64,000 nt of DNA from positions 55,428,001 to 55,492,000 of the forward strand of contig NC_082707.1 in the NCBI RefSeq assembly GCF_030144855.1, in the 5' to 3' direction. Positions 741 through 47,300 of the stretch are shown here, piece by piece. Under the pieces are notes generated by a model that searched no databases, was not told the DNA's origin, and saw nothing but the letters and a program-made list of their open reading frames with translations. This DNA is from Hypanus sabinus. Lineage: Eukaryota. A program made the position numbers and the translations under genes. How positions within the stretch are numbered: position 1 is the first letter of the stretch; each line of letters starts with the position of its first letter.

Positions 741-1127
741 GCTGCATCATTTAGCTTAAAATAACTGACCAAACTTACTATTTTCAAGAATAATTTAACA
801 AATATACTTCTCCAGTTATAACTTAAAGAAAATGTCTATTCCCCCACCCAAACACATTTCACAGGCTACCTAATATTAATTGAAATCCTAAACATAACAA
901 GAATTGATTTTTACAAAGATTTATTTGTCATTAATAGAAAATTACAACTATCAGATATAATAGTCCAAGATGCAAAAACAATTCTCATTGTCTTTGAGAA
1001 TTGTTCTTGCATATTGATGACCTATTTATCAGATTGTTTTATATGGGCATTTTAGGAATAACTCTTGCTAATGAAATGGACTATCATAATGAACAATCAT
1101 GAGTGCAGTTTCAAACCTGATTATTAC

Positions 1128-1204
1128 CTTCAAAGCTTTCAGAATCTCTTCACTATCCCCAGCCTTTCCTATTAGCACAACTTTTGTTCGAATCTGAGGT
1201 ATAT
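1128..1204 (-). CDS. ECT2: ECT2 (RhoGEF, epithelial cell transforming 2) coding exon 2
   Basis: tttgcag|ATATACCT...TTGAAG|gtaata; 77 nt, phase matches exon 1. Encodes (D)IPQIRTKVVLIGKAGDSEEILKALK versus human EMPQIETRVILVQEAGKQEELIKALK. Confidence 0.9.
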
Positions 1205-2689
1205 CTGCAAAGCAGGAATAAATAAATAACAGTCGATACAACATGGCATTGAGTAAAGCCAGTCTTTAAATGAAGGTTCAGAGAACTACAAAAGGTGAAA
1301 AGAATTTAGTATTTATTCAAATGAATGCATATTGCCTTCAAAAAGCTGATATGTTCACTTCATGATAAACCAGAAGGGAATATTCACATGGCTCAACATG
1401 TGTGAGGAACTTCTTCCAAGGAGACCTCTTCTATGGGTTCCAAAGTGAAACCAATGTGAGATCTATACACACTGCCACAAATAGAGCAGTCATTGCTTAA
1501 TTGGCAAATGAGCAAGGTGAATAGGAGTTACGGCACTCCACCTGCAAACCTCACTGGGCTTCTAAAATGAGTTTTACACAGATCAATAGGAAATCTATTC
1601 TACACTCTATGATCTAGAGACAGAACACAATTGGAAACATTGGGGAATAGTACTGACATTCAGGAAGCAAATTACAAACATGTAAATTCTTACTAGGTAT
1701 GGTGCGAGATTATGTGCAAGGAACAAACCAAATTCTATATTAGACAAAAGGTGACTTGCACATAAGATAACACATATCTTTCAACACATCTTAAAGTACC
1801 TTTAGTAATACAACAAACAAGATGCTGAAGGAACTTAGCAGACAGGGTCTGTGGTCGAGAAGGATAATCAGCACATCAGGTTGAACTGAAGGGAGATAAC
1901 CAGTTTGAAAAAGTGAAGGGCTGGAAACAAAGGATAGGTCGATCCATATTTTCTAATAAATTATGTCTACTGTTCAATTTTATTTTTTGAATTTATTAAA
2001 GCTTGACAGCCCTGCTAATAACAGTATTCCCAAAATGTTGCAAGGCTGTGCCAACATTGATAAAGAGAAAGCCATATCCCAATGGTTGGCAACTTGTGGG
2101 GAGGGGGGAGAGAAGAGGGAGATGAAGGCAATAAAATTGTCTCCTGGTAACAAAGTGACAACGTACAAATGATTTATTTTCCAACTTTGACTAAAGGAAG
2201 TTTTTTTGCTTAGCAGAAAACTTAACACACCTTCTCCCCCCCCCCCCCACCCCGTGAAATGGTGCCACTGGTTCAATTACATCCACCACAGAGATCAGAT
2301 TGAATTCATTTCAAGTCTTCATGAAGACAGGGATTTTATTCAAAAGGAATGCACAGGAGAACTAGTCTGGAGTTCAGTGCTCAAGCATCTAGTAGACCCA
2401 GAATTTTCACAAAATAAAAAAAACACAAAATTACTGAGGTCGAAAATGCTGAAGGCTTAGGTCAGACAGTATCAAGGTTCCCACCTTCTCACTCAAACCT
2501 ACAGAGTATTTTAATGCCTCCATCAGTAAAAATGACGTTTATAGATGAAGCTTCTTTTTAAAAATGCCACCTTAGGATATTCAGCTGCATGTTGATTTCC
2601 ACGATTTTTCAGATTCTCAGCGGTCACTTTCTTTTGTTTTTTTTATTGTTGCCTCCAATAACAAACGAGTGTTTTGCTGAGGGAGTCAG

Positions 2690-6085: not shown

Positions 6086-8477
6086 TTGAGGTGTCAGGTC
6101 TCTCAGTGGGAGAGCATTTTGGAGGCAGTGATCACAATTCTATCTCCTTTATCATAGCATTGGAGAGGGATAGGAACAGAGAAGTTAGGGAAACATTTAA
6201 TTGGACTAAGGGGAAATATGAGGCTATCAGGCAGGAACTTAGAAGCATAAATTGGAAACAGATGTTCTCAAGGAAATGTACGGAAGAAATATGGCAAATA
6301 TTCAGGGGATATTTGCATGGGGTTCTGAGTAGGTATGTTCCAATGAAACATGGAAAGGATGGTAGGGTACAAGATCCGTGGTGTACAAAGGCTGTTGTAA
6401 ATCTAGTCACAGAGAAGAGTTTATGAAAGGTTCAAAAACACTAGGTAATGATAGGAATCTAGAAGATTAAAAGGATAGCTGGAAGGAGCTTAAGAATGAA
6501 ATTCAGAGAGCCAGAAGGGGCCATGAGAAGGCCTTGGCGGGCAGGATTAAGGAAAACCCCCAAGGCATTCTACAAGTATGTGAAGAGCAAGAGGATAAGA
6601 TGGGAGAGAATAGGACCAATCAAGTGTGACAGTGGAAAAATGTGTATGGAACTGGAGGAGATGGCAGAGGTACTTAATGAACACTTTGCTTCGGTATTCA
6701 CTATGGAAAAGGATCTTGATGACTGTAGGGATGACTTGCAGTGGACTGAAAAGCTTGAGCATGTAGATATTAAGAAAGAGGATGTGCTGGAGCTTTTGGA
6801 AAGCATCAAGTTGGATAAGTCACTGACCAGACGGGATGTACCCCAGGCTACTCTGGAAAGCAAGGGAGGAGATTGCTGAGCCTCTGGCAATGATCTTTGC
6901 ATCGTCAATGAGGATGAGGGAGGTTCTGGAGGATTGGAGGGCTGCGGATGTTGTTCTCGTATTCAAGAAAGGAAGTAGGGATAGCCCAGGAAATTATAGG
7001 CCAGTGAGTCTCACTTCAGTGGTTGGTAAGTTGATGGAGAAGATCCTGAGAGGCAGGATTTATGAACATTAGGAGAGGCATAATATGATTAGGAATAGTC
7101 AGCATGGCTTTGTCAAAGACAGGTCATACCTTACACGTCTGATTGAATTTTTTGAGGGTGTGACTAAACACGTTGATGAAGGTAGAGCCGTAGATATAGT
7201 GCATATGGATTTTAGTAAGGTATTTGATAAGGTACCCCATGCAAGGCTTATTGAGAAAATAAGGAGGCATGGGATCCAAGGGGTCATTGCTTTGTAGATC
7301 CAGAACTGGCTTGCCCACAGAAGGCAAAGAGTGGTTGTAGACAGGTCATATTCTGCATGGAGGCCGGTGACAAGTCGTGTGCATCAGGGATCTGTTCTGG
7401 GACCCCTACTCTTCGTGATTTTTATAAATGACCTGGATGAGGAAGTGGAGGGATGGGTTAGTAAATTTGCTGATGACACAAAGGTTAGGGGTGTTGTGGA
7501 TCATGTGGAGGACTGTCAAAGGTTACAACAGGACATTGATAGAATGCAAAACTGGGCTGAGAAGTGGCATATGGAGTTTAACCCAGATAAGTGTGAGGTG
7601 AATTTAAAAAGCAAACACGAGGAAATCCACAGATGCTGGAAATTCAAGCTGCCTGTCCTGCTGCATTCCACCAGCATTTTGTGTGTGTTGTGTGAGATGG
7701 TTCATTTTGGTAGGTCAAATATAATGGCAGAATGTAGTATTAATGGTAAGACTCTTGGCAGTGTGGAGGATCAGAGGGATCTTGGGGTCCGAGTCCATAG
7801 GACACTCAAAGCTGCTACGCAGGTTGACTCTGTGGTTAAGAAGGTATACGGTGCATTGGCCTTAATCAATCATGGGATTGAGCTTAAGAGCCAAGAGGTA
7901 ATGCTGCAGCTATATCAGACCCTGGTCAGACCCTCCTTGGAGTACTGTGCTCAATTCTGGTCGCCTCACTACAGGAAGGACATGGAAACATTAGAAAGTG
8001 TGCAGAGGAGATTTACAAGGCTGTTGCCTGGATTGGGGAGCATGCCTTATGAGAATAGGTTGAGTGAACTCGGCCTTTCCTCCTTGGAGCGACAGAGGAT
8101 GAGAGGTGACCTGATAGAGGTGTACAAGATAATGAGAGGCATTGATCGTATGGATAGTCAGAGGCTTTTTCCCAGGGCTTAAGTGCCTAGCACGAGAGGG
8201 TATAGTTTTAAGGTGCTTGGAAGTAGGTACAGAGGAGATATCAAGGGTAAGTTGTTTTTTATTTTTACACAGAGAGTAGTGTGTGCATGGAATGGGCTGC
8301 TGGTGGCGGTGGTGGAGTTAGAAACGATAGGGTCTTTTAAGAGCCTCCTGGATGGCTTCTTGGAGCTTAGAAAAATAGAGGGCTGTGGGTAAAGCCTAGA
8401 TGGTTCTAAGGTAGGGACATGTTCGGCACAGTTTTGTGGGCCAAAGCCTACAGTTTTGTGCTGTAGGTTTCCTATGT
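6086..8477 (+). mobile_element. 5'-truncated CR1 LINE, ORF2 with frameshifts and stops
   Basis: GSDHNSI, NYRPVSLTSVVGKLME, SQHGF, DFSKVFDKVPH, QGSVLGPLLF, KFADDTK, LEYCAQFWSPHY, RGDLIEVYKI; CR1-type 3' UTR to ~8477. Confidence 0.95.
7601..7689. mobile_element. Tiny chimeric PLE-end insertion inside the CR1 RT region
   Basis: Two opposed pieces of the PLE terminal motif, flanked by gtgtgaggtg (7591-7600) and gtgtgagatg (7690-7699). Confidence 0.7.
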
Positions 8478-8909: not shown

Positions 8910-11900
8910 CCATAGACGTAGGAGCAGAACAAGGCCATTTGGCCCATCCAGTCTACTCTGTCATTTCATCATAGCTGATTTATTTTCCTCTGGCTAAACA
9001 AATTTCTCCTCATCTCTGTTATAAAGTGATGTCCTTCTATTCTGAGGCTGTGCCCTCTGGTCCTAGACACTATTTAAAACATTCTCTCTTGGTCCACTCT
9101 GTTTCATCCATTCAACATACAGTAGGTTTCAATAAGAACCCCATCATTCTTCTAATCTTAAGCAAGTACAGACCCAAAGCCATGAAACGCACCCCGTACA
9201 TTAACCTTTTCATTCCTGAGATCCCCATTATCATAAACCTCCTCTGGACCCTCTCCAATGCCAGTTACATGCCTCTTTAGATATGGGGCCTAAATCTGTT
9301 CAAAATACACTATATGTGATCTGACCAATGCTTTATAAAGCCTCAGGTTTAGATCCTTTCTTTTATATTCTAGTCCTCCATAGACGAATGCTAACATTGC
9401 ATTTACCTTCCATACTACCGACTCAACCTGTAAGTTAACCTTTAAAGAACCCGGCATAGGGATTCCCAAGTGCCTTTGCAATTTCTATTTCAGAATTTGC
9501 TCCATTTAGAAAATAGTCTATACCTTTAGTCCTCCTACTAATGTGCATGATCATACACTTCCCCACACTGTATTCCATCTGCCACTTCTATTCCATCCGT
9601 CCTTTCGCAGATGACTTGCTTCCTCAACACTACTTGCTCCTCCACTAATCATTGTATCATTCACAAACGTAGCCACTTTGCCATTAATTCTATCATCCAG
9701 ATTAAGATATAATGTGAAAAACAGCAGTCCCAATACCGACCCCTGTGGAACAGTCACAGGCAACAACTAGAAACTAAGTCCCCTTCATTCCAACTCTGCC
9801 TCCTGCTAGTCAGCCAATCTTCTGTCCAATCTAGCATCTTTCTTGTAACGGCATAGGTTCTTATCTTGATGAGCAGCCTTGTGTGTGGCACCTTGTCAAA
9901 GGCCTTCTGAAAATCCAAGTAAATAATATCCACTTTGACTATCCTGTATGTTATTTCCTCAAAGAATTTCAACAGGTTTGTCAGGGACAATTTCCTTTGA
10001 AGGAAACCATGCTGAATTCAGCATATTTTATCCTGTGCCTCATAGCTCTCATTCTTAATAATGGACTCCAACACCTTGCCAACCACTGAAGTCAGGCTAA
10101 CTGGCCCATAATTTCTTGATTTTTGTCTCCATTCCTTTTTAAGGAATGGATAGACATTTGCAATTTTCCAGTCCTCTGGAACTATTCCAGAATCTCTTCA
10201 TAACCCCAGAGTGCAGTTAATATCTAGTCCAGGTGAATTATCAACCTTCAGGCCTTTCAGCTTCCCAAGCACTTTCTCCTTAGTAGTAGCAACAATCACT
10301 TCTTCCCCCGACACTTGAATTTCTGGTATGCTGCTGGCGTCGTCCATGGAGAAGAATGACACAAAATATTTATTCAATTCATTTGCCATTTCTTTGTTCC
10401 TCTTTACTACTCTCCACTGTAATTTTCCAGTGGTTCAATATCCACTCTTGTCTCTTTTGCTTTGCAGTATATATAACCATATAACAATTACAGCACAGAA
10501 ACAGACCATCCCGGCTCTTCTAGTCCGTGCCAAATGTTTACTCTCAGCTAGTCCCACCGACCCGCACTCAGCCCATAACCCTCCATTCCTTTCCTGTCCA
10601 TATACCTATCCAATTTTACTTTAAATGACAATATCAAACCTGCCTGTACTACTTCTACTGGAAGCTCGTTCCACACAGCTACTACTCTCTGAGTAAAGAA
10701 ATTCCCCCTCGTGTTACCCTTAAACTTTTGCCCCCTAACTTTCAACTCATATCCTCTTGTTTGAATCTCCCCTACTCTCAATGGAAAAAGCCTATCCACA
10801 TCAACTCTATCTAACCCCCTCATAATTTTAAATACCTCTATCAATTCCCCCCTCAACCTTCTACGCTCCAAAGAATAAAGACCTAACTTATTCAACCTTT
10901 CCCTGTAATTTAGGTGCTGAAACCCAGGTAACATTCTAGTAAATCTTCTCTGTACTCTCTCTATTTTGTTGACATCTTTCCTATAATTTGGTGACCAAAA
11001 CTGTACACAATACTCCAAATTTGGCCTTATCAATGCCTTGTACAACTTTAACATTACATCCCAACTTTTACACTCAGTGCTCTAATTTATAAAGGCCAAC
11101 ATACCAAAAGCTTTCTTCACCACCCTATCCACATGAGATTCCACCTTCAGGGAACTATGCACCATTATTCCTAGATCACTCTGTTCTACTGCATTCTTCA
11201 TTGCCCTACCATTTACCACGTATGTCCTATTTGGATTATTCCTACCAAAATGTAGCACCTCACACTTATCAGCATTAAGCTCCATCTGCCATCATTCAGC
11301 TCACTCTTCTAACTGGCCTAAATCTCTCTGCAAGCTTTGAAAACCTACTTCATTATCCACAACACCACCTACCTTAGTATCATCTGCATACTTAGTAATC
11401 CAATTTACCACCCCATCATTCAGATCATTAATGTATATGACAAACAACATTGGACCCAGTACAGATCGCTGAGGCACACCACTAATCACCGGCCTCCAAC
11501 CTGACAGTTACCCACCACTACTCTTTGGCATCTCCCATCCAGCCACTGTTGAATCCATTTTACTACTTCAATATTAATACCTAACGATTGAACCTTCCTA
11601 ACTAATCTTCTGTGCGGAACCTTGTCAAATGCTTTATAGTCCATAGAGACAACATCCACTGTTTTACCCTCGCCAACTTTCCTTGTAACCTCTTCAAAAA
11701 ATTCAATAAGATTTGTCAAACATGACCTTCCACGCACAAATCCATGTTGACTGGTCCTAATCAGACCCTGCCTATCCAGATAATTATATATACCATCTCT
11801 AAGAATACTTTCCATTAATTTACCCACCACTGATGTCAAACTGACAGACCTATAATTGCTAGGTTTACTCTTAGAACCCTTTTTAAACAATGGAACCACA

Positions 11901-12690
11901 TGAGCAATACACCAATCCTCCGGCACCATCCCCATTTCTAATGACATTTGAAATATTTTTGTCAGAGCCCCTGCTATTTCTACACTTACTTCCCTCAAGG
12001 TCTTAGAGAATATCCTCTCAGGACCCGGAGATTTATCCACTTTTATATTCCTTAAAAGTGTCAGTACTTCCTGAAAAAAAGCTGATATCTGTAAAAAAGC
12101 TTTTTGCCAGCTTAGCGTTATATTTTATTTTCTCCCCCTTTATATTTTTTGATTTCCTTCTGTTGGTATTTAAAAACTTCCTAATCCTTTTATGCTATCC
12201 ATGACTTCTCAACAGTACGGTTTCCTCATCCTCTCTTTAGAATACTTCTTTGGGACACATCAATCCAGACTTCTGAATTGCTCCTAGAAATTCCAGCCAT
12301 TGTTGTTCTACCATCATCCCTGCTAGTGACCCCTTCCAATCAAATTTTGCGAGCCCCTCTTTCGTACCTCTGTAGTGCCCTTTACTCCACTGTAATACTG
12401 ATGCATCTTATCTTAGCTTCTCTTCCTGAAACTGCAGGGTGAATTTTATATTATGATCACTGTCTCCTAAGAATTCCTTTACCTTAAGCTCCCTAATCAA
12501 ATATGGTTCATTACATAGCATCCAATCCAAAATTGCCTTTTCCCTAGTGGGCTCAACCAAAAGCTGCTCTAAAAAAAAAGTAATTTTGTAGGCATTCTAC
12601 AAATTCCTTCTCTTGGGATCCAGTATCGACCCGTTTTTCCCAATCTACCTGCATATTGGGATCCATTGTAACATTGACCATTTTGCATGC
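8910..12690 (-). mobile_element. Degraded CR1 LINE on the minus strand, interrupted by a nested CR1
   Basis: Minus-strand ORFs: ANELNKYF, LDFQKAFDKVPH, VPQGSVLG, LRLYKALVR; 3' end near 8910. Confidence 0.9.
10470..12072 (-). mobile_element. Younger 5'-truncated CR1 nested in the older CR1
   Basis: DKSPGP, NYRSVSLTSVVGKLMES, KAFDKVPH, KYADDTK, LEYCVQFWSPNY; short-repeat tail ataaccatataac at ~10470-10485. Confidence 0.92.
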
Positions 12691-16330: not shown

Positions 16331-17280
16331 TTTTACAAGAATGGTGGACATCATCCAGATAGGATTCATCCCTTTTGTAAAAGCAGGAAAGGTTTTAGTT
16401 TTCATAGAGGTGCAGGTCAGAGCTATGAAAACAACATAAACTAGATTAAAAAGAAATTATCTTTCTTTAGATAGGATAATTAAAGGTGATTGGTTATCAA
16501 AAGGGAAGTAATGAATATAGACCCAAACAAATTGATTATTCTTGTTAAAATTTCACAAACCCTGGAACTCAAAGATTAAGATGGGAATGCCATAAGGAGT
16601 TAGCAAGGAAGGCTCCTGATATTAAATTAAGGCAATTTTGAATTGGTCTGTGGAAAAAAAAACCTTTGAGACTTTTTAACCAAAATGTATTACTCTTTTT
16701 TCCCCCTCAAAAGTAGAGACCCATCATTGGGCTAATGAGAATGGCAACATTGATATTCTGTAACAGATACTGGTATTTTATATCTGACTTACTGAAGGTT
16801 ATAACAGTTTTGCAAGATATGCTTTTTTTGGTATTGGAGTTGAAACACTAACAATAATTTTTAGGGAATAAATGAGAGGTACAAATGGAGACCAGTTTCT
16901 GCACATTTCTAGCCAAGCCATTCCCTGCTCATAACAAGAAGAGTTCTAACAAAATAAAAGCTCAGCACCCAGTAATTGAAATTTGAATGTTTCTAGCTCA
17001 CCAATGTGGATAGCTGCATTTTAGAATACAAATACACTCCAAGCAAACTTGAAAACTGGCTTGTGGATCCAGCAGAGTAATTCAAAATGAAATAGACAAT
17101 TTTCAACAACCACCGTCACCCCTCCCAACACAGAAAACCTGATACACAACTGTGAAACCAGGTTGAACAATTTATTGAATTGTGTCACAGGGCACTGCAT
17201 GGAACAAAATCTTCTAAGAGAATAATCAAGCCCTGCCAGCAAAATTACATTGCAGCTTTCAATTCATTAACGTATTGCAA

Positions 17281-17300
17281 CACACACACACACACACACA
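17281..17300. repeat. (CA)10 microsatellite
   Basis: Read directly. Confidence 0.9.
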
Positions 17301-17359
17301 CCAACTTCAGAAGCTACTATGACTTAACATTAGTGAAATATAGCAAACTTCCTCTCATT

Positions 17360-17710
17360 AAAGAATTTTATTTTTTCGGCCCCTTGCTTTCAGCTCCTTT
17401 TTTTTTGGTAGTAGGCATTAATATCTTCTGTTGCTAAGTGTATTTACAGTTTTGGGGGTTTGATTGTCCTGATTTATATTCTCTATATTGTGTTGTGGTT
17501 GGTCTGGAGTTTTTTTTTGGTTGCGGGGCTTGGGGAGGATACTAATTTTACATGTCTTCAATTTGGGTGCTTTCTCAATTATCTTTCTTTGTATCATATT
17601 GTTATTGTATGTTTATTTTTGCACTGTATCAATGTTCTTCATTTTGATCTGGGGGTTTTTATCTGTAGCTATGTAGAAAATGTATAAAAAAAAACTAATA
17701 AAAAAAAAGC
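17360..17710 (+). mobile_element. Probable L1/Tx1-like 3' UTR fragment with poly(A), antisense to the THAP 3' end
   Basis: T/G-rich tract ending in aatgtataaaaaaaactaataaaaaaaaa; no coding motif to confirm the family. Confidence 0.45.
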
Positions 17711-17813
17711 ATTTTAAAGAACTTTTTTTTAAAAAGAACTTTTCATCCATTTGTCCTCCATACAGCCCAACCTTTTCTGCAACTGGACTTATTCAAACAG
17801 CAGCCCCCATTTA

Positions 17814-18770
17814 TTACAATACATTAGTATTCCATAAATCATCAGTTTTATTTTCTCTCAGCTCATTGATAATTTTGGTAAGACTGTCTATTTTCTGCTC
17901 TTTTCTCTTCAATTTTTGTTGAAGTACTCTAAACCTTTGCCGATGTTCTTCATTCTTCTTCCTTTCCCAGGCAAGCTTCTTTTCTAAAGTTCTCCTGATG
18001 GTATCGGGACAAGGGCTCATAAAGTAACTGTGATCTTGAGGAAATGTCATTCCTGACAAATCTTGGTCACCCTGAGAAGAAAGCACATTCTCAGCGGAAC
18101 ACTGCAATTCTTCCGAAGGCTGGACTGCGGGGGTTAGATGATGAGTCTGTGTTTCTGGGATAAGTACTTCTGTAGATATCCAAGTTGTTTCTTCTGGTAT
18201 TATTACTCTGTCAGCTGCTTGATCAGCAGATGATGTGAATAAACATGGCAACACATCAGCAGATACATCCACCGAATCTACAAGTGTGGTACATGTATCC
18301 GATTGTACTTCAGGTCTTGATAATACGTTAGCTGTCCAATGGAGTGCGTCTGAGCACAGAACTGCAGCTGAATCTTGAGGTGCTGCCTCTGAATGACCTA
18401 CAATTAATTCACCTGAAACTGATTCCATTTTTCCCTCTGTTCCAGATGTTTCAGTTTGTGCACTGCAGTTAAAGACAGCAAGAACCTGTGAAGATTCTTC
18501 TTCAGGCTTCAAAGGCATTTCCAATACTTGAGAGAATTCTGCTAAATTTAAGACAGCTGCTGCAGCTAGTTGAGCTAGTCGCCCTGAGTTGAGAGTGTCT
18601 GGTGTTAATGGAGACTGTTCATTTGTTACCTTATTTGGGCTGATTGTTTGACTTAATGTTTCATCAATTAAAGCAGGTTGTGAATTCAAAAGTGACATCT
18701 CCACATCTGAAGATTCCTTATGGTGTCCACCATAAGTCTTTACTTTATTTGACTTTCTGGAGCCTGTCGC
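17814..18770 (-). CDS. THAP-domain protein, exon 3 (acidic linker, DHSY HCF-1-binding motif, coiled coil, stop)
   Basis: tatttttcag|GCGACAGGC acceptor; 957-nt open frame to TAA; DHSY at 18024-18035 followed by the heptad-rich RRTLEKKLAWERKKNEEHRQRFRVLQQKLKRKEQKIDSLTKIINEL. Confidence 0.88.
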   Translation of the reverse strand, partial: ATGSRKSNKVKTYGGHHKESSDVEMSLLNSQPALIDETLSQTISPNKVTNEQSPLTPDTLNSGRLAQLAAAAVLNLAEFSQVLEMPLKPEEESSQVLAVFNCSAQTETSGTEGKMESVSGELIVGHSEAAPQDSAAVLCSDALHWTANVLSRPEVQSDTCTTLVDSVDVSADVLPCLFTSSADQAADRVIIPEETTWISTEVLIPETQTHHLTPAVQPSEELQCSAENVLSSQGDQDLSGMTFPQDHSYFMSPCPDTIRRTLEKKLAWERKKNEEHRQRFRVLQQKLKRKEQKIDSLTKIINELRENKTDDLWNTNVL

Positions 18771-19383
18771 CTGAAAAATAAGATCAGTGAAAATATTTGA
18801 ATAAAAATAATTGACTTTACATTGTATGGTCCATCTCTGAAATAGTGTAAACACTCCAAATATTCCTCATATGCATCGTTGAAGAAAACAACATGATTAC
18901 TTTTCAAAGAACGCGAACAAGAATCAACAGCCCTTCCCTTCATCCTCAAACTACGTACAAATGTGCACCTTTGTGCATCTCTGCAACATCTCTCCTTTAC
19001 ACTCTTTGCTTCTGTAGCCAATTAGAATATAGCAATTCAGCATTCCCATAAAAGATAATTTCTGAATTTCTTTTTGGGACAGCAGTAGTTAATGAAAATG
19101 GACCAGTATCTGGCTTTAGAGAGCAACTTCTTAACCATTTTACGAGTAACATGCATTTGTTACTCAACTACTTAGATTAATTCTGTCAGAATTGACAGAA
19201 AATTAATCAAAATTTGATCTTAATATATGGAAGCCTAAAAAGTTAAGCATATGATTATTACCAGCCAACAAAAGACGTACTTGTAGCCACTTGGAAATAC
19301 AGTACTTAAAGAGTATATTGAAAATTTATACTTAATAAACATTACTAAAAATTATTTAACAGTATAAATACTAGACACAATAC

Positions 19384-19573
19384 CTTATTTTTAGGGGGTG
19401 GAAATATAGTTGGTACAGAGGAAAATTTTAAATGCCTTCTATCATTCCGCTCTTCAAAACACTCTTTTATGAAGTGATCACTGCAAAGAGTTGCCCTTGG
19501 TGATGGTGCCCAGTTTTCTCGTGCCACTGCTTTTAACCATTTTGCCATGAGGTCAGGTCTTGAAATGGGAAAC
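19384..19573 (-). CDS. THAP-domain protein, exon 2
   Basis: gttgtag|GTTTCCC...AATAAG|gtattg; encodes (R)FPISRPDLMAKWLKAVARENWAPSPRATLCSDHFIKECFEERNDRRHLKFSSVPTIF, containing the THAP P, W, CxxHF and AVPTIF-like box. Confidence 0.92.
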
Positions 19574-19879
19574 CTACAACACAACCCAAAATAAGGCAGA
19601 TCAATATGACAGATCAAAAGTGGAATTTTAGATTCATATTGTTCTGAGTTGCCATATCTATCAAAACAAACCTCTGCATTTACCTATATAGCTGCCTATC
19701 AGCAATGACCTAATTGCGTTGAGGTGCCTTAAACTCATAATTAAATGAGTTCATCAGTTCAAGGATCTCAACAGAACAAATTCAAGTCCAAAACACAAAA
19801 TTACCAATCATTACATCAGCAGTACTTCAGATATGAAAATTAATGCATTGCTGAGTCAGAAAACTGATCATATGGGGGA

Positions 19880-20575
19880 AGAAAACTAAAACAGAACTTG
19901 CACTGTGAATGGCAGAACTCTGGAAAGTATTGTTGAATAGAAACTAACTGCAGTATAAAAGCATCATTCCCTGAATGTGATAACACAGGTAGATAGGTTA
20001 GTGAAGGCGGCATATCAGGTACTTGCCTTAATTGAATGAAGCACTGAGTACAGTAACTATGACATTATGTAACAGTTTCAGAAAATATTAGTTAGGTTGC
20101 ACTTAAGAGTATTATGAACATTTCTGATTGATATGATGTAGGAAGAATGAGATTAAGCCAGGGAGGGTACAAAAAAATTCATAGGATGTTGCCCAGATTG
20201 TGTAACTTGAGCCACGAGAAGATGGGGACAGATGACATAATAGAGGGATATAGCTTCAGAGGCATGGATGGGGTATACCACCAGAGTCTGTTTCCCATGA
20301 TAGGCCATCTGAAACTAGAGGGCTTACGTTTAAGGTGAAAGGAAGGTTTAAAAGGGATCTGAGGGCCATGTTGTTCATACAAATTATTGTTGGTATCTGG
20401 AATGAGCTGCCAGAGAAGACTGTGGAACAGTAACAACACTTAAAAGGCATCAATACAAGTACTTGACTGAGCAAAGGCATATGGAAACAATGCAGACATC
20501 TGCATTAATATTGACTGGCAACATGGTCTGTATGAACGTAGGGGTCAAAAGACCCATTTGTATGCTGTACAACTT
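19880..20575 (+). mobile_element. Old CR1 3' relic in THAP intron 1
   Basis: Degraded RMLP, SLFP, WNELP-like motifs and a CR1-like 3' UTR. Confidence 0.65.
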
Positions 20576-20804
20576 GATAATTTTAATAAAATGCAGATCA
20601 CCATATCCCCTACAGAAATACCATGGTTGATCTTCCCCATATTCCCTTTACCCTCCCCCTCCCAGATCCAACCACTCACCTGCACAATGGGGAGCGTTTT
20701 TGGTTGTCAATCACCCCGGGATGGGGAGGAAACCAGAGGGACCCCCACGGGGCTACAGGAAGGACTCCACATAGACAGTACCAGAGCTCAGGATTAAACC
20801 ATAT

Positions 20805-21042
20805 ATCTCTGATAGTGAGGTCAAACAGTGGGAAAATCTCTGATAGTGAGGTCAGAGGGAATATCTCTGATAGTGAGGTCAAAGCGTGGGAATGTCTCTG
20901 ATAGAGAGGTCAAACAGTGGAAATGTCTCTGATAGTGAGGTCAAACAGTGGGAAGGTCTCTCATAGTGAGGTGAATCAGTGGGAATATCTCTGATAGTGA
21001 GGTCAAACAGTGGGAAAATCTCTGATAGTGAGGTCAGAGGGA
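20805..21042. repeat. Minisatellite, 8 units of 27-31 bp (atctctgatagtgaggtcaaacagtgggaat), inside a SINE head
   Basis: Eight consecutive units read directly; flanks are a minus-strand SINE (ccagagctcaggattaaacc ... ctgaaccactgtgc). Confidence 0.92.
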
Positions 21043-21960
21043 CCTGAACCACTGTGCAAGCATTCACACCGCCCATTTATCTCCCATTTGTAACATTATT
21101 TTGCTTATTACGAATTCCATGTGCATTTAGACAAAGTTCTTTTAATTTTGACTTAACTGGAGATATAGCCACACACTCATACAATATGTTCTGTCCCTTT
21201 ATGACAGACTCTGGGTTGCATTAGCACTATCATCTCATGAACACTCACCGCTCCACTCCACTTTATTTAAGCCTCAACAATATCTCTAGTTATTCCATTC
21301 ATAAGGATGCTAAGTCCCAGCCTACTCCAATGGAAGCACATCCCAACAGAACAAGGCCCTCTTCCCTCAGAGCAGAGGCTCCCGACCTGCTTCTACTGAC
21401 TGCTTCCTTAATGGTATTGATCCACAACAAAAAAAGGTTGGGAACCCCCGCTTCAGAGCAACAATAATTGAAACTGATTTCTTGACCCATTCTCAATTTA
21501 TACAACTTTTCTTTCAAACCAATGAATAGAGAAGTTTTCCACTGCAAGAACACATTTTGCTGGGAAGAGATTGAGATGAATGGAACCTGTTCTGTATCTC
21601 TTCACCAGTGATTCCTCAAGTCAACCAGCTGGAGCCTGGAGGTGCAGAATGACAGGATGTGGAATCATATTTTTATCCATGTAGTCAGTCAGATCCGTAA
21701 GGGCGTGTTGAATTGGATTCACTGCCGTAATGGGTAAATCATTCAGCAATCCACCACAACTTTTTAAAAAGTGATAAGATAGAGATATCAAATCTTGAAA
21801 TCCAGTGACAGAACTTTTGCAAGGGAGGTTGCTCTAACTGTATCTTTCCACTTTCCCTAATAAAATACATATCTGGCAAAACCAGTGGTAACTGGATGCA
21901 ACACACACAAAATGCTGGTGGAACACAGCAGGCCAGGCAGCATCTACAGGTAGAAGCGCT

Positions 21961-21995
21961 GTCGATGTTTCAGGCCTAGACCCTTCATCAGGACT
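21961..21995 (-). ncRNA. Minimal type I hammerhead ribozyme motif of the PLE (near-intact relic)
   Basis: Minus strand aguc-CUGAUGA-a-gggu-cuag-gccu-GAAAC-AUC-gac; both core boxes are intact, but the triplet is AUC rather than GUC. Confidence 0.65.
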
Positions 21996-22998
21996 AACTG
22001 AAAGGAGAGATACTAAGAGATTTGAAAGTAGTGGGGGGAGGGGGAAATGCGAAATGATAGGAGAAGACCGGAGGGGGTGGGATGAAGCTAAGAGCTGGAA
22101 AGGTGATTGGCGAAAGTGATACAGAGCTGGAGAAGGGAAAGGATCATGGGACAGGAGGCCTTGGGAGAAAGAAAGGGGGAGGGGGGAGCACCAGAGGGAG
22201 ATGGAGAACAGGCAGGGTGATGGGCAGAGAGAGAGGGAAAAAAACAATATGTCAGGGATGGGGTAAGAAGGGAAGGAGGGGCATTAACGGAAGTTAGAGG
22301 TCAATGCTCATGCCATCAGGTTGGAGGCTACCCAGCCGGTATATAAGGTGTTGTTCCTCCAACCTGAGTGTGGATTCATCTTGACAGTAGAGGAGGCCAT
22401 GGATACACATATCAGAATGGGAATGGGATGTGGAATTAAAATGTGTGGACACTGGGTGATCCTGCATTCTCTGGCGGACAGAGCATAGGTGTTCAGCGAA
22501 ACGGTCTCCCAGTCTGCGTCGGGTCTCACCAATATATAAAAGGCCACACCGGGAGCACCAGATGCAGTATACCACACCAGCCGACACACAGGTGAAGTGT
22601 CGCCTCACCTGGAAGGACTGTCTGGGGCCCTGAATGGTGGTGAGGGAGGGTGTCAGGGCAGGTGTAGCACTTGTTCCGCTTACAAAGATAAGTGCCAGGA
22701 GGGAGATCGGTGGGAAGGGATGGGGGGGGGGGGGGGGGAGAGACAAGTGGACAAGGGAGTCGCATAGGGAGCTTTTTCAGCGAAACGGTCTCCCAGTCTG
22801 TTCTCCATCTCCCCCTGGTGCTCCCCCATCCCCCTTTCTCTCCCATCCCATGATCCTTTCCCTTCTCCAGCTCTGAATCAATTTCGCCAATCACCTTTCC
22901 AGCTCTCAGCATCATCCCATCCCCTCCGGTCTTCTATCATTTCGCACTTCCCCCTCCCCCTCCTACTTTCAACTCTCTTACTATCTTTCCTTTCAGTT

Positions 22999-23033
22999 AG
23001 TCCTGACAAAGGGTCTCGGCCTGAAACGTCGAC
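22999..23033 (+). ncRNA. Second PLE hammerhead motif (core mutated)
   Basis: aguc-CUGACAA-a-gggu-cucg-gccu-GAAAC-GUC-gac; CUGANGA box changed to CUGACAA. Confidence 0.55.
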
Positions 23034-23513
23034 AGTGCTTCTCCCTATAGATGCTGCCTGGCCTGCTATGCTCCACCAGCATTTTGTGTGTGTTGCTTGA
23101 ATTTCCAGCATCTGCAGATTTCCTCGTGTTTGGTAATTAGATGCAACTGTATTTTTGTATGAAAAGGTTATGTATCGATGCCAGAATATTACGTTTTTAA
23201 ACAAACCGACTACATACAATCCCAATTAAAATTAATTTAACAAAGAACACATAATATCCACAGCAATGCGTAAAACTGGACAGTAACAGCATTGCAGAGA
23301 TCACTGGTCAGAGGTCCTGTTTTCAAGAGCTGAAAAAAATTGCTTTTCTTGAGTAAGTAGGATTAAAATCACCACCCAACTTCCCAAAGCACACAAAAGA
23401 ACAGTATGCCTTTCAGACAAGGAAATAAAGCCAGGATTCATCAAGGCAGCTTTAATGAGGCCTAGAGGAGGATCAACCCCCCAAAACAGCGTTCTAGCAG
23501 TCTCACTGCATAC

Positions 23514-23584
23514 CTGTGAAAAGTTATGCCGCTTCCTTTCTTGAAGCGGTTTTTACAGTCGAGTGCACTACACGAGACTGGCAT
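23514..23584 (-). CDS. THAP-domain protein, exon 1
   Basis: ATG at 23584; MPVSCSALDCKNRFKKGSGITFH(R) has the THAP Cx4C start; donor CACAG|gtatgc; phase 2 matches exon 2. Total protein 405 aa. Confidence 0.92.
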
Positions 23585-24154
23585 CGTCCCGGGAAGCCGA
23601 ATACAAGCCCGAACATTCAGCGCCCCGTTGCCTGCAAGAAAGATGGCGGACTGGGCGGCGGTGACGTCACCGGCAAGTCAGACTGGGATTGGATCTCGGT
23701 GAAATAATAAAAATATTCCGAATTTCCTGTCAGCGCTTGAAAGTTCAGTCGTAGATCGCATTGCATTAAGGCGAAAATGATTCTTTCAGCAGGAATTTAA
23801 ACTGCCGTTTGTTTAACCAACACAAGATTTTTTTCGTATGCACAAAGACTAAAGTTCGTGATCTTCAATTACGCAGCTCCCAAACAGCATTAATTTAAAA
23901 CCATATTTGATTGCGTTTTCATTAACTGGATGATATTTTTGTATTCTGTATTACTTGCGTAACTATTCCTTCCGGTAGCACCTACGGCTGTTGTTACAAT
24001 AAACCCTGTTTCCGCCCTCTTCGTCTGATAGGTCAACTAACAAACCCAAATCGATCTAATTGGTGACTGTCCTACCGGTGTCAATAATAGGAACGGAAGA
24101 AATGAGTGACTGTATTTCTCTCAGTATTTACCCTTTCCCCCAGATTCTGCAACA
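23585..24154. promoter_or_regulatory. Probable bidirectional promoter shared by the THAP gene (-) and NCEH1 (+)
   Basis: 570 bp between divergent ATGs. YY1-like AAGATGGCGG at 23640-23649, GC box, palindrome CGGTGACGTCACCG (full CRE) at 23659-23672, ETS-like CTTCCGG near 23970. Confidence 0.7.
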
Positions 24155-24292
24155 ATGCGAGCAACACTCGGAGTAATCTTAATTGTTGCCTCTTTGACAG
24201 CTTACTATGTCTACATTCCAATTCCGAACTCGCTGTCCGAACCCTGGAAATTGATGCTGCTGGATGCAACGTTCAGAGGAGTGCAGGATGTG
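24155..24292 (+). CDS. NCEH1: Neutral cholesterol ester hydrolase 1, exon 1 (signal anchor)
   Basis: [46 protein letters not shown] matches human ...[31 protein letters not shown]; donor GTG|gtatat. Confidence 0.93.
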
Positions 24293-27200
24293 GTATATTT
24301 TCTCTTTCTATTCATACTACTTTCCCAACAGGTTGCTGAGAAATCAAAGATTAGAATGACCATTTTAAATATTAAAGGAATGCGTTCATTATTTCAAAAG
24401 TATTTCAGTAGAATAGACTATAATGGGGTTATTTATTTGTGTTTCCTGTTTTGTTGTAGAACTCTATGTACATGCGTCCTATCCCTTAACTCATTTAAAT
24501 TACTGTGCATTATATCATTTTTTCGAACTAAATCCGCGTAGGACCCCGTGATGATGATCAAGCTAGGAGTGGCAGCCTGGCAGGCGGTGGACCGCGTATA
24601 ACTGGTATATAGCAGTGCACGTCAATTAGTACTGTATCGTTCTTTTATTTTTCTTTTAAAGGTCCAGTTATATTTATCGGGATCTTTGGTTTTCCTTACC
24701 TTTACAATTTATGTATAATATATAAGAATTTCGCCTGTAAGATGGCCCGTGTCACATGAAAACCGAAACATTATTTTGTGGGGTTGCTTCCCAGGCAAAT
24801 TGGGTTGTTCAACACAAATCAAAATTACATAAAGGCCAGTGAAACGAATGACCCAATTAATCTGTTTCCTGTTACTGTTGAATGAGGGAGAAGGTTTCAA
24901 CAGTGTGATAATTTTTGAATTGGTCCAGGGATCTTTAAAAATATGGATTTGATTTGGTGATTAATGTGGTACTTTGGGTATGACAGAGAAGTGCAAAACT
25001 TATGTCAACTTGCACAAAATTCTTTCGTGCATTTGAGGATCGAAACAGATTTTGACTGAAGCATTTAGGGCTGCTTTGAAATTAATGGGAAGAGCCCTAT
25101 TTGGAGAATCTGAGGTGTCTTCTAAATAAATGTTTTCTTTTAACTTTTCATTACTGATGTTCACCCTCAGTTGAACTTCATCCCACTCATTGTCACTGAT
25201 CTGGACAGTCTTCATCCCTGAAAATCACTTGGTGATTCCTTACCATTATTCAGCAACTCCTCTTCCAGGAAGTTCTCAGCCCAGTTGCCTTCCATTCCAT
25301 CTGTGCAATAGGGTTTTCCACTGCTTGCAATAATTTCATAAAATATCCAACCCTCACCTGCAGAAGTGTTCATCTTCAGTGGGGAGGTCTAATGTTGATG
25401 TGCTAATTTAGATGCTCCTGGTTTATCTTCACCAATTTAGCAGACCAACAAGAGGTGTGTATATTCTATGTATAAAATATCTGAAGGAGGTCATGGTTGA
25501 GCTCTATACATTATATGGACCATAATTAGAGTATAAGATGCACTAATATATTGTGTTAGCATTAGTGAGGACATGGAAAAGATCTAAAAGAATGTGGCTA
25601 GAGTTGGAGTAGTTTCATTATGAAGAAAAGATTATCTTCAGGCCTTTATATGGAACAGAGAATGAAAAAATATTTATTTCCTTTTAGCAAAAGCACTAAT
25701 AACCAGGGAAAGCTTTACACTATTTTTCTAGAAGGATTAGAGAGTATTTGAAAAAAATAGAGGTCAAGAATTCACCTTGACTAAAGGACAGTATAACCGA
25801 AAGCTCATCACTGTTGAAAAAGAACAAATGATGTGCCCTAAACTGCAAAGCTAAGAAGCAAGGGTTCTTAAGTGGGTTTAAGCTGCATTATCACATTTTT
25901 GGCAGATACGGACTCAGTAGTTTTATTCCTTGTTTTACATTTCTGCAATGCAACTGCAAAAAAAAATTATAAATCATTGACGGAAATTTAACAGGAGGAG
26001 CATGATCTTTTGGCTGAAGACAATTACAAACACAGGATAGGCACTGACAATATTTAACCAAAATATTAAAAAAACAAAAATATACTGGAAATAGGATAAT
26101 CAGATGGATGGAGGCCATTTTTTCAAAACTGCAACTTGTACCTAAAATATTTGATTTATTCCCTTGAAACTTTCTGACTTGTTTAATATTTCCAGTATTT
26201 CCTAATTTTACTTCACAGTCCTTACTGTTTTGAACAATTTTGTCAACAATTCTAACCCTTCATTTCCTTTCCTATTCTCTTGGATTTTGAGAGCTAGCGT
26301 ATGAACACCAATTCCATGGTAGAATATTTTGCCTGGACAATTCATTAACTTTAATAGAGTTTATTGTCTTTTGTTCTTTAGATTTATTCTCAGTGTTATC
26401 CTCAGAAACATAACATCAATGACGGTTCCTTCTTAATGTCATTCCTGATAATTCATGCACTCAATGCTTGAATATTGATGTTATATTTGGAACACCCCAA
26501 CTGAAATTAATATTTTAAAATTCTGTATTAAATTGGCCAAAAATAAGTTACAATAATTTTATTTTTGCCTGAAGTGCCAATAATCTAAAAACTAACAAAA
26601 TATTTCTGGTACAGTATGATCAATTTTTACAGAAAGTGCTAGGATTCATTAATATGGCACAGCAGGTGGTGGCACCTTGTCTCCAAAACTAGAGGTGTAA
26701 CCTTGTATAAACGAGATTTTTAGTTTGTGACAGATTCAGTTTGCTGGAAACAGTCTGTTTTCAGATTTGCTTGCCCTATGCTGACATGACAACATTCAGC
26801 ATGGTCACCAAGCATTTTCCCCATACAAGGAGAAGAAAGTGTGGTGACCATCCAATGAACTGTACCCTTAAACCTGTTACTGACATGTTACGGAACCAAA
26901 GTGAAGAGCATGAGGTAAACAAGATAAACAGTAATGTAGAGTTTCAAAAAGACTTTTCCAGAATACATCCCTTCCTAAAATGACTATAAACTTTGAGGTA
27001 TGTATTAATCACAGGAGGTCAAAACCAACAGCTTATGTTTTATGCACAGCTTAAGACCAGTTGTGGAGTAGGGTGGACCAAAAACAGTTCTTTAAATATT
27101 CTAAATTTAAAAATTACATTAGTAGCTCCTTGCTCAATGGAGAAACCTGGTATACCCATTTACGTTATTTGTTTCATGAATCTATATGACATTTTTTTAT

Positions 27201-34707: not shown

Positions 34708-35325
34708 CTTGTTCTGGACAGAACTATCACCATCCGACTCAAGCTTCAAGCTCTTATTTATCCAGTGCTTCAGGCTTTTGACTTCAATACTCCTTCTTAT
34801 CAACAAAATATGGCTGCACCCATCTTGAACAAACATGTCATGGCCCGCTTTTGGTTGGAGTATCTAAATGGTGATCCAGGATTTGTCCAGGCAATGTTGG
34901 TCAACAATCATACAGCTTCAGACCAAAGTCAGCTGACGTCCATTCGAGCTCGCTTAAATTGGACAACACTATTACCACAATCATTTAAAAAGAACTTCAA
35001 ACCTGTTATCCAGGTAATGGGAAATCCACAGGTTATCAAGGAGTTGCCAACACTGATAGACCCAAGAGCAGTTCCACTAATTGCAGATAAAGAAATTCTG
35101 CAGTTGTTACCAAAAGCTTACATTTTGACCTGTGAGCATGATATTCTGAGAGATGATGGAATAATGTATGCAAAGCGATTAGAAGATGCCGGAATAGAAG
35201 TGACCTTAGATCATTATGAAGATGGATTTCATGGTGCAATGATATTTGCACTGCCCCCTACCAGTTTTGTTGTGGGAAACAAGATTATGAACAACTATAT
35301 AAACTGGCTCGATAAAAATCTGTGA
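34708..35325 (+). CDS. NCEH1: NCEH1 exon 5 (catalytic Asp and His, stop)
   Basis: cctgtag|CTTGTT; [24 protein letters not shown]...[12 protein letters not shown]...EDGFHG...WLDKNL*. The five exons sum to 1227 nt = 408 aa. Confidence 0.96.
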
Positions 35326-44370: not shown

Positions 44371-47300
44371 GCCAGGGCCAGCCGCCACTGATGGCTACGG
44401 TGGCTGGCCTTCGGGATAGCCTCCTGTATGTAAGGGATAGAAGGTCGGGACGCCGGTTTTTGGTCGATACTGGTGCCGAGATCAGCGTTTTACCTCCGAC
44501 GAGTTACGACACCCGCAGCAGGGCACCGGGGCCCCCGAGGGCCGTGAACGCAGCACAGTAAGGACCTATGGCACCCGTCAGGTGCAGCTACAGTTCGACT
44601 CCAGACAGTTCACGTGGGACTTTACACTGGCCGCCGTAGCCCAACCGCTTCTGGGTGCGGATTTTTTGCGGGCTCACAGCCTACTGGTAGACCTGCCCAG
44701 GAAGAGACTGGTACACGTCGAGACCTTTCAGATGTTCTCCCTGGGTGCAGCCCAGTTGCCAGCCCCTCACCTTGGCTCCATCACGCTGTCCGACAACGAC
44801 TTCACCAGGGTCCTGGTGGATTTCCCATCGGTTCTGGCACCGCAGTTCACAGCGGCCATGCCCCGACACAGCGTACAGCACCACATCCCGACCCAGGGAC
44901 CACCCCTCCACGCCCGCGCTCAGCGGCTTCCCCCGGACAAGCTCCGACTGGCGAAGGAGGAGTTCCAGAGGATGGAGGAATTGGGGATCATCCGGCGGTC
45001 CGACAGCCCATGGGCCTCCCCCCTGCACATGGTGCCCAAAACGACGGGAGGCTGGAGACCGTGCAGCAACTACCGCAGGCTGAACGAGGCTACCTCACCG
45101 GACCGCTACACTGTGCCGCACATTCAGGACTTTGCAGCAAACCTGCACGGCGCACGGATCTTCTCCAAGGTAGACCTCGTCCGAGGGTATCATCAAATCC
45201 CGATGCATCCTGACGACATCCCCAAAACGGCTCTCATCACCCCGTTTGGCCTTTTCAAGTTCCTCTGCATGCCGTTCGGCCTGAAGAATGCCACACAGAC
45301 GTTCCAGCGGTTAATGGACGCGGTGGGACGGACCTGGACTTCTATTTGTTCATCTATTTGGATGACATCCTCATAGCCAGCAGCAGTCGTCAGGAGCATC
45401 TGTCCCACCTCCGTCAACTCTGCGCCCGACTGAGTGAGTACGGTCTTACAATCAACCCTGCCAAATGCCAGTTCGGACTCAATACCATTGACTTCCTGGG
45501 CCACAGGATTTCTAAAGACGGGGCAACCCCTCTGCCCGCTAAGGTAGATGTGGTCCGCCACTTCCCCCGACCCACCACGATCAAAGGCCTTCAGGAATCT
45601 GTAGGTATGGTCAATTTCTACCACCGCTTCCTCCCTTCAGCTGCCCGGATCATGCGCCCCCTGTTCGCCCTGATGTCAGGTCCGAGCAAGGACATTACCT
45701 GGGACGAGGAGTCCGTTGCCGCAATGCTAGTACATCCCAGAATGGACGCCCCTACCGCCCTCACATTGGACGCATCTAACACGGCAGTCGGTGGGGTGCT
45801 GGAGCAACTCATCGCAGGTCGCTGGCAACCCCTGGCGTTTTTCAGCAAACACCTGCGGCCACCCGAGCTCAAGTACAGTGCTTTCGACTGGGAACTGTTG
45901 GCGCTCTACCTGGCAATCCGGCATTTCAGGTACTTCCTAGAAGGCCGGCCCTTCACCGCGTTCACGGACCACAAACCGCTTACCTTTGTGTTTACGAAAG
46001 CGTCCGACCCCTGGTCGTCCCGCCAGCAATGCCACCTGTCCTACATCTCTGAATACACGACGGATGTCCGGCACCTCTCAGGTAAGGACAATGTCGTGGC
46101 GGATGCGCTCTCTTGCCCTACCATTCATGCCCTTTCCCAAGGGGTAGACTTTGAGGCACTGGCAGAGGCACAGCAGGCAGATGAGGAGATTCCGAGTTAC
46201 AGAACCGCAGTCTCCGGTTTGCAGCTCCAGGACCTCCCCGTAGGCCCGGGTGAGAGGACCCTACTCTGTGACGTCGCCACCAGCCAGCCCCGTCCCGTCG
46301 TCCCGACAGCCTGGCGGCGCCGTGTTTTCGACTCCATTCATAACTTGGCGCATCCCTCCATCCGGACCACAGTCTGGATAGTTTCCAGCAGGTTCGTTTG
46401 GCATGGACTCCGCAAACAGGTCAGTGAATGGGCCAAAACGTGCATGCACTGCCAGACGGCCAAAGTGCAGCGGCACACCAAAGCCCCACCGCAACAGTTC
46501 CATCCCGCCCACCGGCGTTTCGACCACATTCATGTGGATATCGTGGGCCCCCTGCCAGTGTCGCGCAGAGCGCGGCACCTCCTGACTATCGTGGACCGGT
46601 TCACAAGATGGCCAGAGGCGGTCCCGCTCACCGACACCACCTCCGAATCTTGCGCCCGAGCCCTGATCACCACCTGGATATCTCGCTTTGGTGTACCGGC
46701 CCACATTACCTCCGACAGAGGCGCCCAGTTCACCTCCAGCCTGTGGTCAGCTATGGCCAGCCTTTTGGGGACTCAGCTGCACCACACAACTGCCTACCAC
46801 CCACAGTCGAACGGGCTAGTGGAGCGTTTCCACCGTCACCTGAAGTCGGCCCTCATGGCCCGCCTGCGAGGAGCCAACTGGGCAGACGACCTTCCCTGGG
46901 TCCTACTCGGCATCCGCACAGTGCCCAAGGACGACCTGCACGCCTCGTCGGCCGAGTTGGTATACGGCGCGCCCTTGGTCGTCCCCGGGGAGTTCCTACC
47001 AGCCCCACGGGGGCAAGAGGAAGATCCCGCAGCAGTCCTGGGCAGACTACGCGAGAAGCTCGGTAACCTGGCCCCCATACTCACTTCACAGCACGGGCAG
47101 AACCCGACCTGCGTACCCAAAGACCTGCAGAACTGTAAGTTTGTGTTTGTACGAAGGGGCGGGCATCGGCCACCGCTGCAGCGGCCATACGAGGGGCTGT
47201 TTATGGTGCTCCGGAACAACGGGTCCACGTTCGTGCTGGACGTTGGGGGGAAAGAGGAGGTTTTCACGGTGGACCGCCTCAAACTGGCCCATGTGAACCT

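Follow-up and report, generated by a model that had tools for sequence, protein, structure and literature searches.

A three-exon THAP gene between ECT2 and NCEH1

The DNA analyzed here is a stretch of 64,000 nucleotides (nt) from the stingray Hypanus sabinus (contig NC_082707.1; the whole stretch is called the window below), in which a gene for a THAP-family protein occupies positions 17814 to 23584 of the minus strand, between ECT2 and NCEH1. An original prediction, made from the letters alone, had described it as an intact gene of three exons with GT-AG borders and 405 codons, which could be assigned to no named THAP. When the gene model was rebuilt, the three minus-strand exons were found to splice together in frame to 1218 nt, that is 405 codons and a stop, and both introns have a GT donor and an AG acceptor. 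The encoded protein of 405 amino acids (aa) is letter-for-letter identical to NCBI RefSeq entry XP_059802309.1 of Hypanus sabinus (P0001), so that the predicted structure stands as it was drawn.

The coding part of exon 1 (23514-23584, 71 nt) specifies residues 1-23 plus 2 nt, includes the zinc ligands C5 and C10, and is followed by the GT donor at 23513. Intron 1 (19574-23513) is of phase 2 and filled with repeats. Exon 2 (19384-19573, 190 nt, residues 24-87) supplies the remaining THAP domain, with W36, C54, H57, F58, P78 and the SVPTIF box, and matches Pfam THAP by itself (E 3e-11). Intron 2 (18771-19383), of phase 0, is spliced out in a ray transcript (L002) that is described below. The coding part of exon 3 (17814-18770) covers residues 88-405 and the stop, and comprises a basic tail, an acidic linker, an HCF-1-binding motif (HBM) and a coiled coil. 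Past the stop, L002 aligns to 17813-17735, 17368-17298 and 17181-17026, which marks 17026-17813 as 3' untranslated region (UTR), at least in part. On the other side of the gene, the 5' UTR, within which the L002 alignment reaches 23625, and the putative core promoter lie at 23585-23700. All of these features are on the minus strand.

Domain content of the encoded protein

A Pfam search of the 405-aa protein returned THAP (PF05485) only, with 59.7 bits against a cut-off of 23.9. The complete C2CH finger that had been predicted is present: the zinc ligands C5, C10, C54 and H57 are all there in the spacing C-x4-C-x43-C-x2-H, and they are invariant or nearly so across the ortholog alignment (A1). 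In addition, P26, W36, F58, P78 and the SVPTIF box (AVPTIF in its family form) fall at exactly the THAP1 positions. The full-length AlphaFold2 (AF2) model, with a predicted local distance difference test score (pLDDT) of 43, was of no use for the THAP domain; a run on the domain only reached pLDDT 82. Compared with solved structures by Foldseek, the domain-only model matched THAP2 (template modelling (TM) score 0.74) and THAP1 at E 2e-6, and the P-element THAP structure at E 0.003.

A short basic tail then precedes an acidic linker of 221 residues (residues 105-325, isoelectric point (pI) 4.05), in which two islands are conserved. The first, LNSGRLAQLAAAAVLNLAEFSQVLE at residues 147-171 with the core LAQLAAAAVLNL at residues 152-163, belongs to an Ala-rich helix of residues 147-175 (LNSGRLAQLAAAAVLNLAEFSQVLEMPLK; 18507-18593, minus strand) that is nearly invariant in rays, sharks and chimaera. 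Column identity in alignment A1 is 0.98 at residues 151-165 among elasmobranchs, AF2 placed a helix at 149-161 with low confidence, and no counterpart of this helix was found. The second island, EETTWISTEVLIPE, lies at residues 280-293. Further on, the motif DHSY (residues 333-336; 18024-18035, minus strand) fits the HCF-1-binding consensus [D/E]HxY, is kept in all orthologs including that of coelacanth, and stands six residues ahead of a coiled-coil helix (residues 342-395; 17847-18008, minus strand). The latter was modelled at pLDDT 80-97, has L/F/L/L/I/L/I/L at the a/d heptad positions, and carries the basic clusters RKK and KLKRK, a candidate nuclear localisation signal. An [D/E]HxY motif beside a C-terminal coiled coil is the arrangement of the HCF-1-recruiting THAP factors (THAP1, THAP3, THAP7 and THAP11 type). 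Thus the acidic linker, Ala-rich helix, DHSY motif and C-terminal coiled coil of the original prediction are each borne out, by the pI, the conserved columns and the AF2 model of the coiled coil.

Neither a nitrobindin (haem-binding) domain nor an RNase-H-like catalytic transposase region behind the THAP domain was found in the 405-aa protein, for which Pfam gave THAP only and which ends past the coiled coil. The RefSeq label of XP_059802309.1 is 'peroxynitrite isomerase THAP4-like'. Judged by the domains that Pfam sees, THAP and no nitrobindin, this enzyme name is a misnomer.

Expression and purifying selection

A Logan contig of 1713 nt from run SRR8090269 (L002) represents an intron-less transcript of the ortholog of another ray. 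Aligned to the window, it falls into three blocks with ends at 23514, 19575/19384 and 18767. These ends coincide with the predicted junctions, which indicates that splicing takes place there in the related ray. The gene of the chimaera Callorhinchus (L001) has exons of 71, 190 and 699 nt, the first two being equal in length to those of the stingray.

Selection was measured as the ratio of nonsynonymous to synonymous substitution rates (dN/dS) by the Nei-Gojobori method (NG86), for stingray against the related ray and for stingray against chimaera. Overall, the ratio was 0.185 between the rays; against chimaera, a pair with nearly saturated dS, it was 0.17-0.19. When the ray pair was divided by region, the THAP domain had 0.018, the Ala-rich helix 0.095, HBM and coiled coil 0.048, and the linkers 0.4-0.6; over the comparisons the ranges were 0.004-0.02 for the THAP domain, 0.05-0.12 for HBM and coiled coil, and 0.4-0.8 for the linkers. 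Selection on the gene is purifying. The two checks suggested with the original prediction, on dN/dS and on splice junctions, therefore came out in its favor: the ratio (about 0.18 overall) is not neutral, and a spliced transcript with the predicted junctions exists, in the related ray. What was directly observed (exon structure, domains, sequence conservation, purifying selection, a conserved position beside NCEH1, and a spliced transcript from a related ray) describes a real, conserved and functional gene that encodes a transcription factor of the THAP family.

Orthologs in cartilaginous fishes and coelacanth

Ortholog models were obtained in rays, skates, sharks of five orders and the chimaera Callorhinchus. 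Among these cartilaginous fishes identity is 76-97% inside the THAP domain and 64-78% outside it. An exhaustive hidden Markov model (HMM) search was run over 1.84 billion cluster representatives with a profile built from alignment A2, which covers the protein outside the THAP domain, and a cut-off of E 0.001. Only four proteins passed, one from shark, one from chimaera, one from coelacanth, and a marginal 235-aa protein that is THAP1/2-like. The coelacanth match (P0018) scored E 1e-24, and its current model (P0020), of 412 aa, likewise bears the label 'THAP4-like'. No tetrapod or ray-finned relative was present among the 1.84 billion representatives, which stand for predicted proteomes clustered at 50% identity; this absence is provisional. 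For the C-terminal part, for the full alignment and for the THAP region, word-indexed protein searches retrieved nothing but cartilaginous-fish orthologs and three distant THAPs; as they missed even the coelacanth protein, they say little on absence elsewhere. The ESM Atlas yielded generic THAP clusters only.

Between stingray and coelacanth the THAP domain is 73% identical and the HBM with the coiled coil about 70%, while the linker has diverged. Orthologs in these two animals indicate that the gene is older than the split of cartilaginous and bony vertebrates. Most likely it was present in the ancestor of jawed vertebrates, and we infer that it was later lost from ray-finned fishes and from tetrapods. 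The original prediction had considered a lineage-restricted paralogue; this has to give way to an old gene of jawed vertebrates that Chondrichthyes and coelacanth kept. The same distribution is reported for Pdx2, an ancient vertebrate paralogue kept in cartilaginous fishes and coelacanths and missing from ray-finned fishes and tetrapods (PMC2944030). Pdx2 belongs to the unrelated homeobox family, and the precedent concerns distribution only. The stingray gene would be a further case of an ancient gene retained by cartilaginous fishes and coelacanth and lost in ray-finned fishes and tetrapods.

The chimaera ortholog (P0024, L001 10001-13731) has 319 aa, and its acidic linker is shorter by some 86 residues (~176-261 in the stingray protein), so this part of the linker appears dispensable. 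It retains the Ala-rich helix, the island TWI.TEVLIPE, the HBM and the coiled coil. Besides, some RefSeq isoforms X2 (P0002 of Rhinoraja, P0013 of Stegostoma and P0005 of Heptranchias) are predicted to begin at Met33 or with a different first exon, and are without C5 and C10. If such isoforms are real, they would be coiled-coil/HBM proteins unable to bind DNA, and possibly dominant-negative partners.

Relation to the named THAP proteins

The THAP domain was compared with those of reviewed Swiss-Prot THAPs, and identity was at most 44% for all of them: 37-44% for THAP1, 40% for THAP4, 38-39% for THAP3, 38% for THAP2, 28-38% for THAP5, and 32-35% for THAP6 to THAP9 (33% for THAP9). Identity to the P-element THAP was 19%. 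In a profile search of the PDB, THAP1 was the best match with 83.7 bits, gapless over residues 1-81, followed by THAP2 with 64 bits. Fish and frog THAP1 also align gapless; THAP4, THAP5 and THAP8 need 3-8 extra positions. By sequence, THAP1 is the nearest THAP among those comparable. Since domain identity to any named THAP stays at or below 44%, against 73% between stingray and coelacanth, the earlier statement that no named THAP matches closely still holds.

THAP1, the product of the human DYT6 gene, is a protein of 213 aa. The stingray protein resembles it in the equal-length gapless domain, the three exons, the intron after coding nucleotide 71 and an HBM immediately followed by a C-terminal coiled coil that carries basic clusters. 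Such a THAP1/THAP3-like architecture (THAP domain, HBM, coiled coil) had been noticed in the original prediction and was found here again. However, the stingray protein is about twice as long by virtue of an acidic linker of about 220 residues with conserved islands of its own, and its gene adjoins NCEH1, which is another neighbourhood; no such gene turned up in the tetrapods that the search covered. In THAP1, likewise a gene of three exons, intron 1 follows c.71 (PMC4049367), and intron 1 of the stingray gene has the same position and phase. This three-exon layout with the c.71 intron is a feature at the level of paralogues and is no proof of THAP1 orthology.

Coelacanth scored 74 bits against human THAP1, stingray scored 80 bits against human THAP1, and coelacanth scored 134 bits against stingray. 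If the proteins were THAP1 orthologs, the members from bony vertebrates would be expected nearer to each other than to the cartilaginous one, and this is not what was seen. Against human THAP1 the coelacanth protein has no advantage over the stingray protein, which suggests a separate paralogue rather than orthologs of THAP1. Taken together, the best explanation, and one that we hold to be probable, is a functional THAP gene with an orthology group of its own (chimaera, shark, ray and coelacanth), nearest to THAP1 and ortholog of none of the twelve human THAPs, which sits beside NCEH1, is ancestral to jawed vertebrates and was lost in ray-finned fishes and tetrapods.

Several points weigh against this explanation. 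The case for a separate orthology group is built on identities, bit scores, indels and neighbouring genes, not on a tree. THAP5 evolves fast in tetrapods, with 28% identity to the stingray protein for Xenopus and 37% for human. The absence from ray-finned fishes and tetrapods was read from predicted proteomes, in which unannotated genes would be missed, and members inside the 50% cluster of coelacanth would likewise escape the search. The documented adjacency to NCEH1 is that in stingray, white shark and chimaera, all of them cartilaginous fishes. The transcript comes from a related ray, not from Hypanus sabinus itself. Finally, a canonical HBM is no guarantee of HCF-1 binding, as THAP5 has the motif yet failed in co-immunoprecipitation (PMC13631171).

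As for a specific origin, the gene might constitute an unnamed thirteenth vertebrate THAP lineage, possibly a lost duplicate that arose from the THAP1/2/3 group when vertebrate genomes were duplicated early on (on a segment of the human 3q26 type), kept only in slowly evolving cartilaginous fishes and coelacanth, with an Ala-rich helix that may recruit a co-regulator used by no other THAP. We put this forward tentatively, as a proposal with the odds somewhat against it. If it is true, these animals would have an HCF-1-linked regulator that none of the standard model vertebrates possesses.

Most of the shark proteins carry the NCBI name THAP5-like, and an unlikely alternative is that the gene is the 1:1 THAP5 ortholog of cartilaginous fishes and coelacanth, which moved to or stayed at NCEH1, tetrapod THAP5 having diverged fast. 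Overall size agrees (372-413 aa for THAP5 in Swiss-Prot and 395 aa in human, against 405 aa), as do the long linker, the HBM and the C-terminal coiled coil; moreover, tetrapod THAP5 is so variable (28-38% identity) that low identity is weak evidence. On the other hand, all THAP5 entries have 3-4 extra positions in the domain, where fish and frog THAP1 are gapless, and their identity is below that of THAP1, THAP4 and THAP3. Outside the domain, the exhaustive search revealed no similarity: no THAP5 representative reached E 0.001 with the C-terminal profile, whereas the marginal THAP1/2-like protein did. Duck THAP5 sits between PNPLA8 and DNAJB9 (PMC8042899), and the neighbours of the stingray gene are instead NCEH1 and ECT2. 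With THAP4, whose name is borne by the stingray and coelacanth entries, the protein shares 40% identity in the THAP domain, including the stretch WLKAV..NW, but THAP4 carries a nitrobindin domain and the stingray protein does not.

The reading as a THAP1, THAP2 or THAP3 ortholog whose linker expanded in its own lineage seems still harder to defend, and we give it a small chance. It would account for THAP1 being the best solved-structure match, gapless over 81 residues, for THAP1 identity being the highest (42-44%), and for the three exons, the common first-intron position and the like arrangement of HBM and coiled coil. Yet fish and frog THAP1 are just 37-42% identical, the C-terminal profile recovered no THAP1 representatives, and coelacanth, at 73% identity to stingray, has 74 bits against 80 bits to human THAP1, the opposite of what orthology predicts.

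THAP domains occur in P-element transposases as well, and the original prediction had entertained a domesticated P-element N-terminus that lost its catalytic domain. The structural match to the P-element THAP at E 0.003 also speaks for it. A separate domestication of a P element is nevertheless unlikely, and a recent one of this type very improbable: identity is only 19% to the P-element THAP and 33% to THAP9, the intron position is common with THAP1, HBM and coiled coil are of the host type, Pfam detects no transposase domain, and the gene is single-copy at one conserved site beside NCEH1 in ray, shark and chimaera (three of the three lineages examined).

That the model is decaying or non-functional, open by chance or mis-annotated, has next to no credibility, its sole support being that the RNA evidence is from a species other than Hypanus sabinus, against strong purifying selection, the conserved exon structure, the spliced transcript of the related ray and ortholog models of 319-426 aa in more than 12 cartilaginous-fish species and coelacanth; L002 and the dN/dS values rule it out.

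The gene is a new, unnamed, ordinary extra member of the well-known THAP family. A literature search found no paper describing it; RefSeq, however, already predicts it under inconsistent automatic names. The orthologs are called THAP4-like 'peroxynitrite isomerase' in stingray and coelacanth, THAP5-like in most sharks, or uncharacterized, so that RefSeq naming is inconsistent and in one case functionally wrong. The gene adds a conserved member to a family that is counted as twelve genes in recent reviews. As the protein has the standard THAP toolkit, the gain is chiefly one of cataloguing and evolution, not of mechanism.

Proposed function

Most THAP proteins have the motif [D/E]HxY beside a coiled coil; through the motif HCF-1 is brought to promoters, and through the coiled coil the proteins dimerise, which is thought necessary for DNA binding (PMC13631171, a 2026 review). 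The same three modules are under strong constraint in the stingray gene, from which we infer DNA binding, dimerisation and HCF-1 binding: the protein probably binds specific DNA sequences as a dimer and recruits HCF-1. Contact with the DNA site would be made by the THAP finger (C2CH) at the N-terminus, and the dimer would form through the coiled coil at the C-terminus. DHSY, just before the coiled coil, may bring HCF-1, together with its partners in chromatin, to the promoters that the protein targets; THAP1 and THAP3 have been shown to act in this way. The Ala-rich helix of the acidic linker, together with the second island EETTWISTEVLIPE, would probably dock a further partner. Readings of the conserved linker motifs as SIN3-interaction or SUMO-interaction sites are speculation from loose motif fits.

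Neighbouring genes and a probable common promoter

The prediction had placed the gene between ECT2 and NCEH1, and both neighbours were identified. The first coding exon of NCEH1 lies at 24155-24541 on the plus strand, given here as an open reading frame (ORF) with an approximate donor position, from the Hypanus contig gene table. The product in that table has 408 aa and matches COesterase, BD-FAE and Abhydrolase_3; a later exon at 34765-35325 matches Abhydrolase_3. From the ATG of the THAP gene to that of NCEH1 there are 571 bp, the two genes being divergent on opposite strands. The white shark (Carcharodon) has the same head-to-head arrangement with a gap of 585 bp. In Callorhinchus the head-to-head pair is kept, with about 4.2 kb between the coding regions, where a tiny model of 32 aa is located. 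An ECT2 exon (DIPQIRTKVVLIGKAGDSEEILKALKVI), oriented like the THAP gene, lies downstream of it at about 1117-1205 (minus strand). It matches the gene that follows the THAP gene in Callorhinchus, and its best PDB match is 4n40, 'Protein ECT2' (E 0.007). This short exon was not identified by Pfam; the PDB sequence search did identify it.

Within 23500-24100, the stretch common to the THAP gene and NCEH1, the observed/expected ratio of CpG is at least 1. A motif scan upstream of the ATG detected a palindromic cAMP-response element (CRE), TGACGTCA, at 23662-23669 and a YY1-like site, AAGATGGCGGA, starting at 23640. The region is probably a CpG-rich bidirectional promoter common to both genes. The CRE palindrome TGACGTCA and the YY1-like GCCATCTT box (window 23640-23669) seem conserved in sharks and Mobula, where the over-extended RefSeq models P0009, P0011 and P0021 translate the CRE/YY1 stretch as '..VTSAA..GRHL..'. 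In Callorhinchus a match to CCGGTGACGTCA is found about 640 bp upstream of the ATG (L001 9349-9363).

Repeats and mobile elements in the window

The decayed repeats that had been noticed near the gene were also confirmed. Intron 1 holds an insertion of about 1.2 kb at 21898-23096, bounded by nested inverted arms that total some 320 nt per side (167, 96 and 54 nt, 89-93% complementary). Between these arms, a 150-aa ORF at 22294-22746 (minus strand) gives a GIY-YIG nuclease match (E 5e-5). The insertion has the look of a decayed mobile element that carries GIY-YIG, whether Penelope-like or of another type. The same intron contains a tandem array at 20803-21036, with a 31-bp unit in 7.7 copies and 85% match.

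Between the THAP gene and ECT2, much of the DNA consists of reverse-transcriptase fragments that resemble long interspersed nuclear elements (LINEs); RVT_1 matches with frame breaks were located at 7331-8182 (plus strand) and at about 9100-12100 (minus strand). On the other side, downstream of the NCEH1 exon at 34765-35325, there is a long 681-aa ORF at 45346-47391 (plus strand), in which the end of a reverse transcriptase is joined by RNase H and by the zinc-binding and core domains of an integrase. It is the pol of a Ty3/gypsy-type long terminal repeat (LTR) retrotransposon, and is largely intact in appearance.

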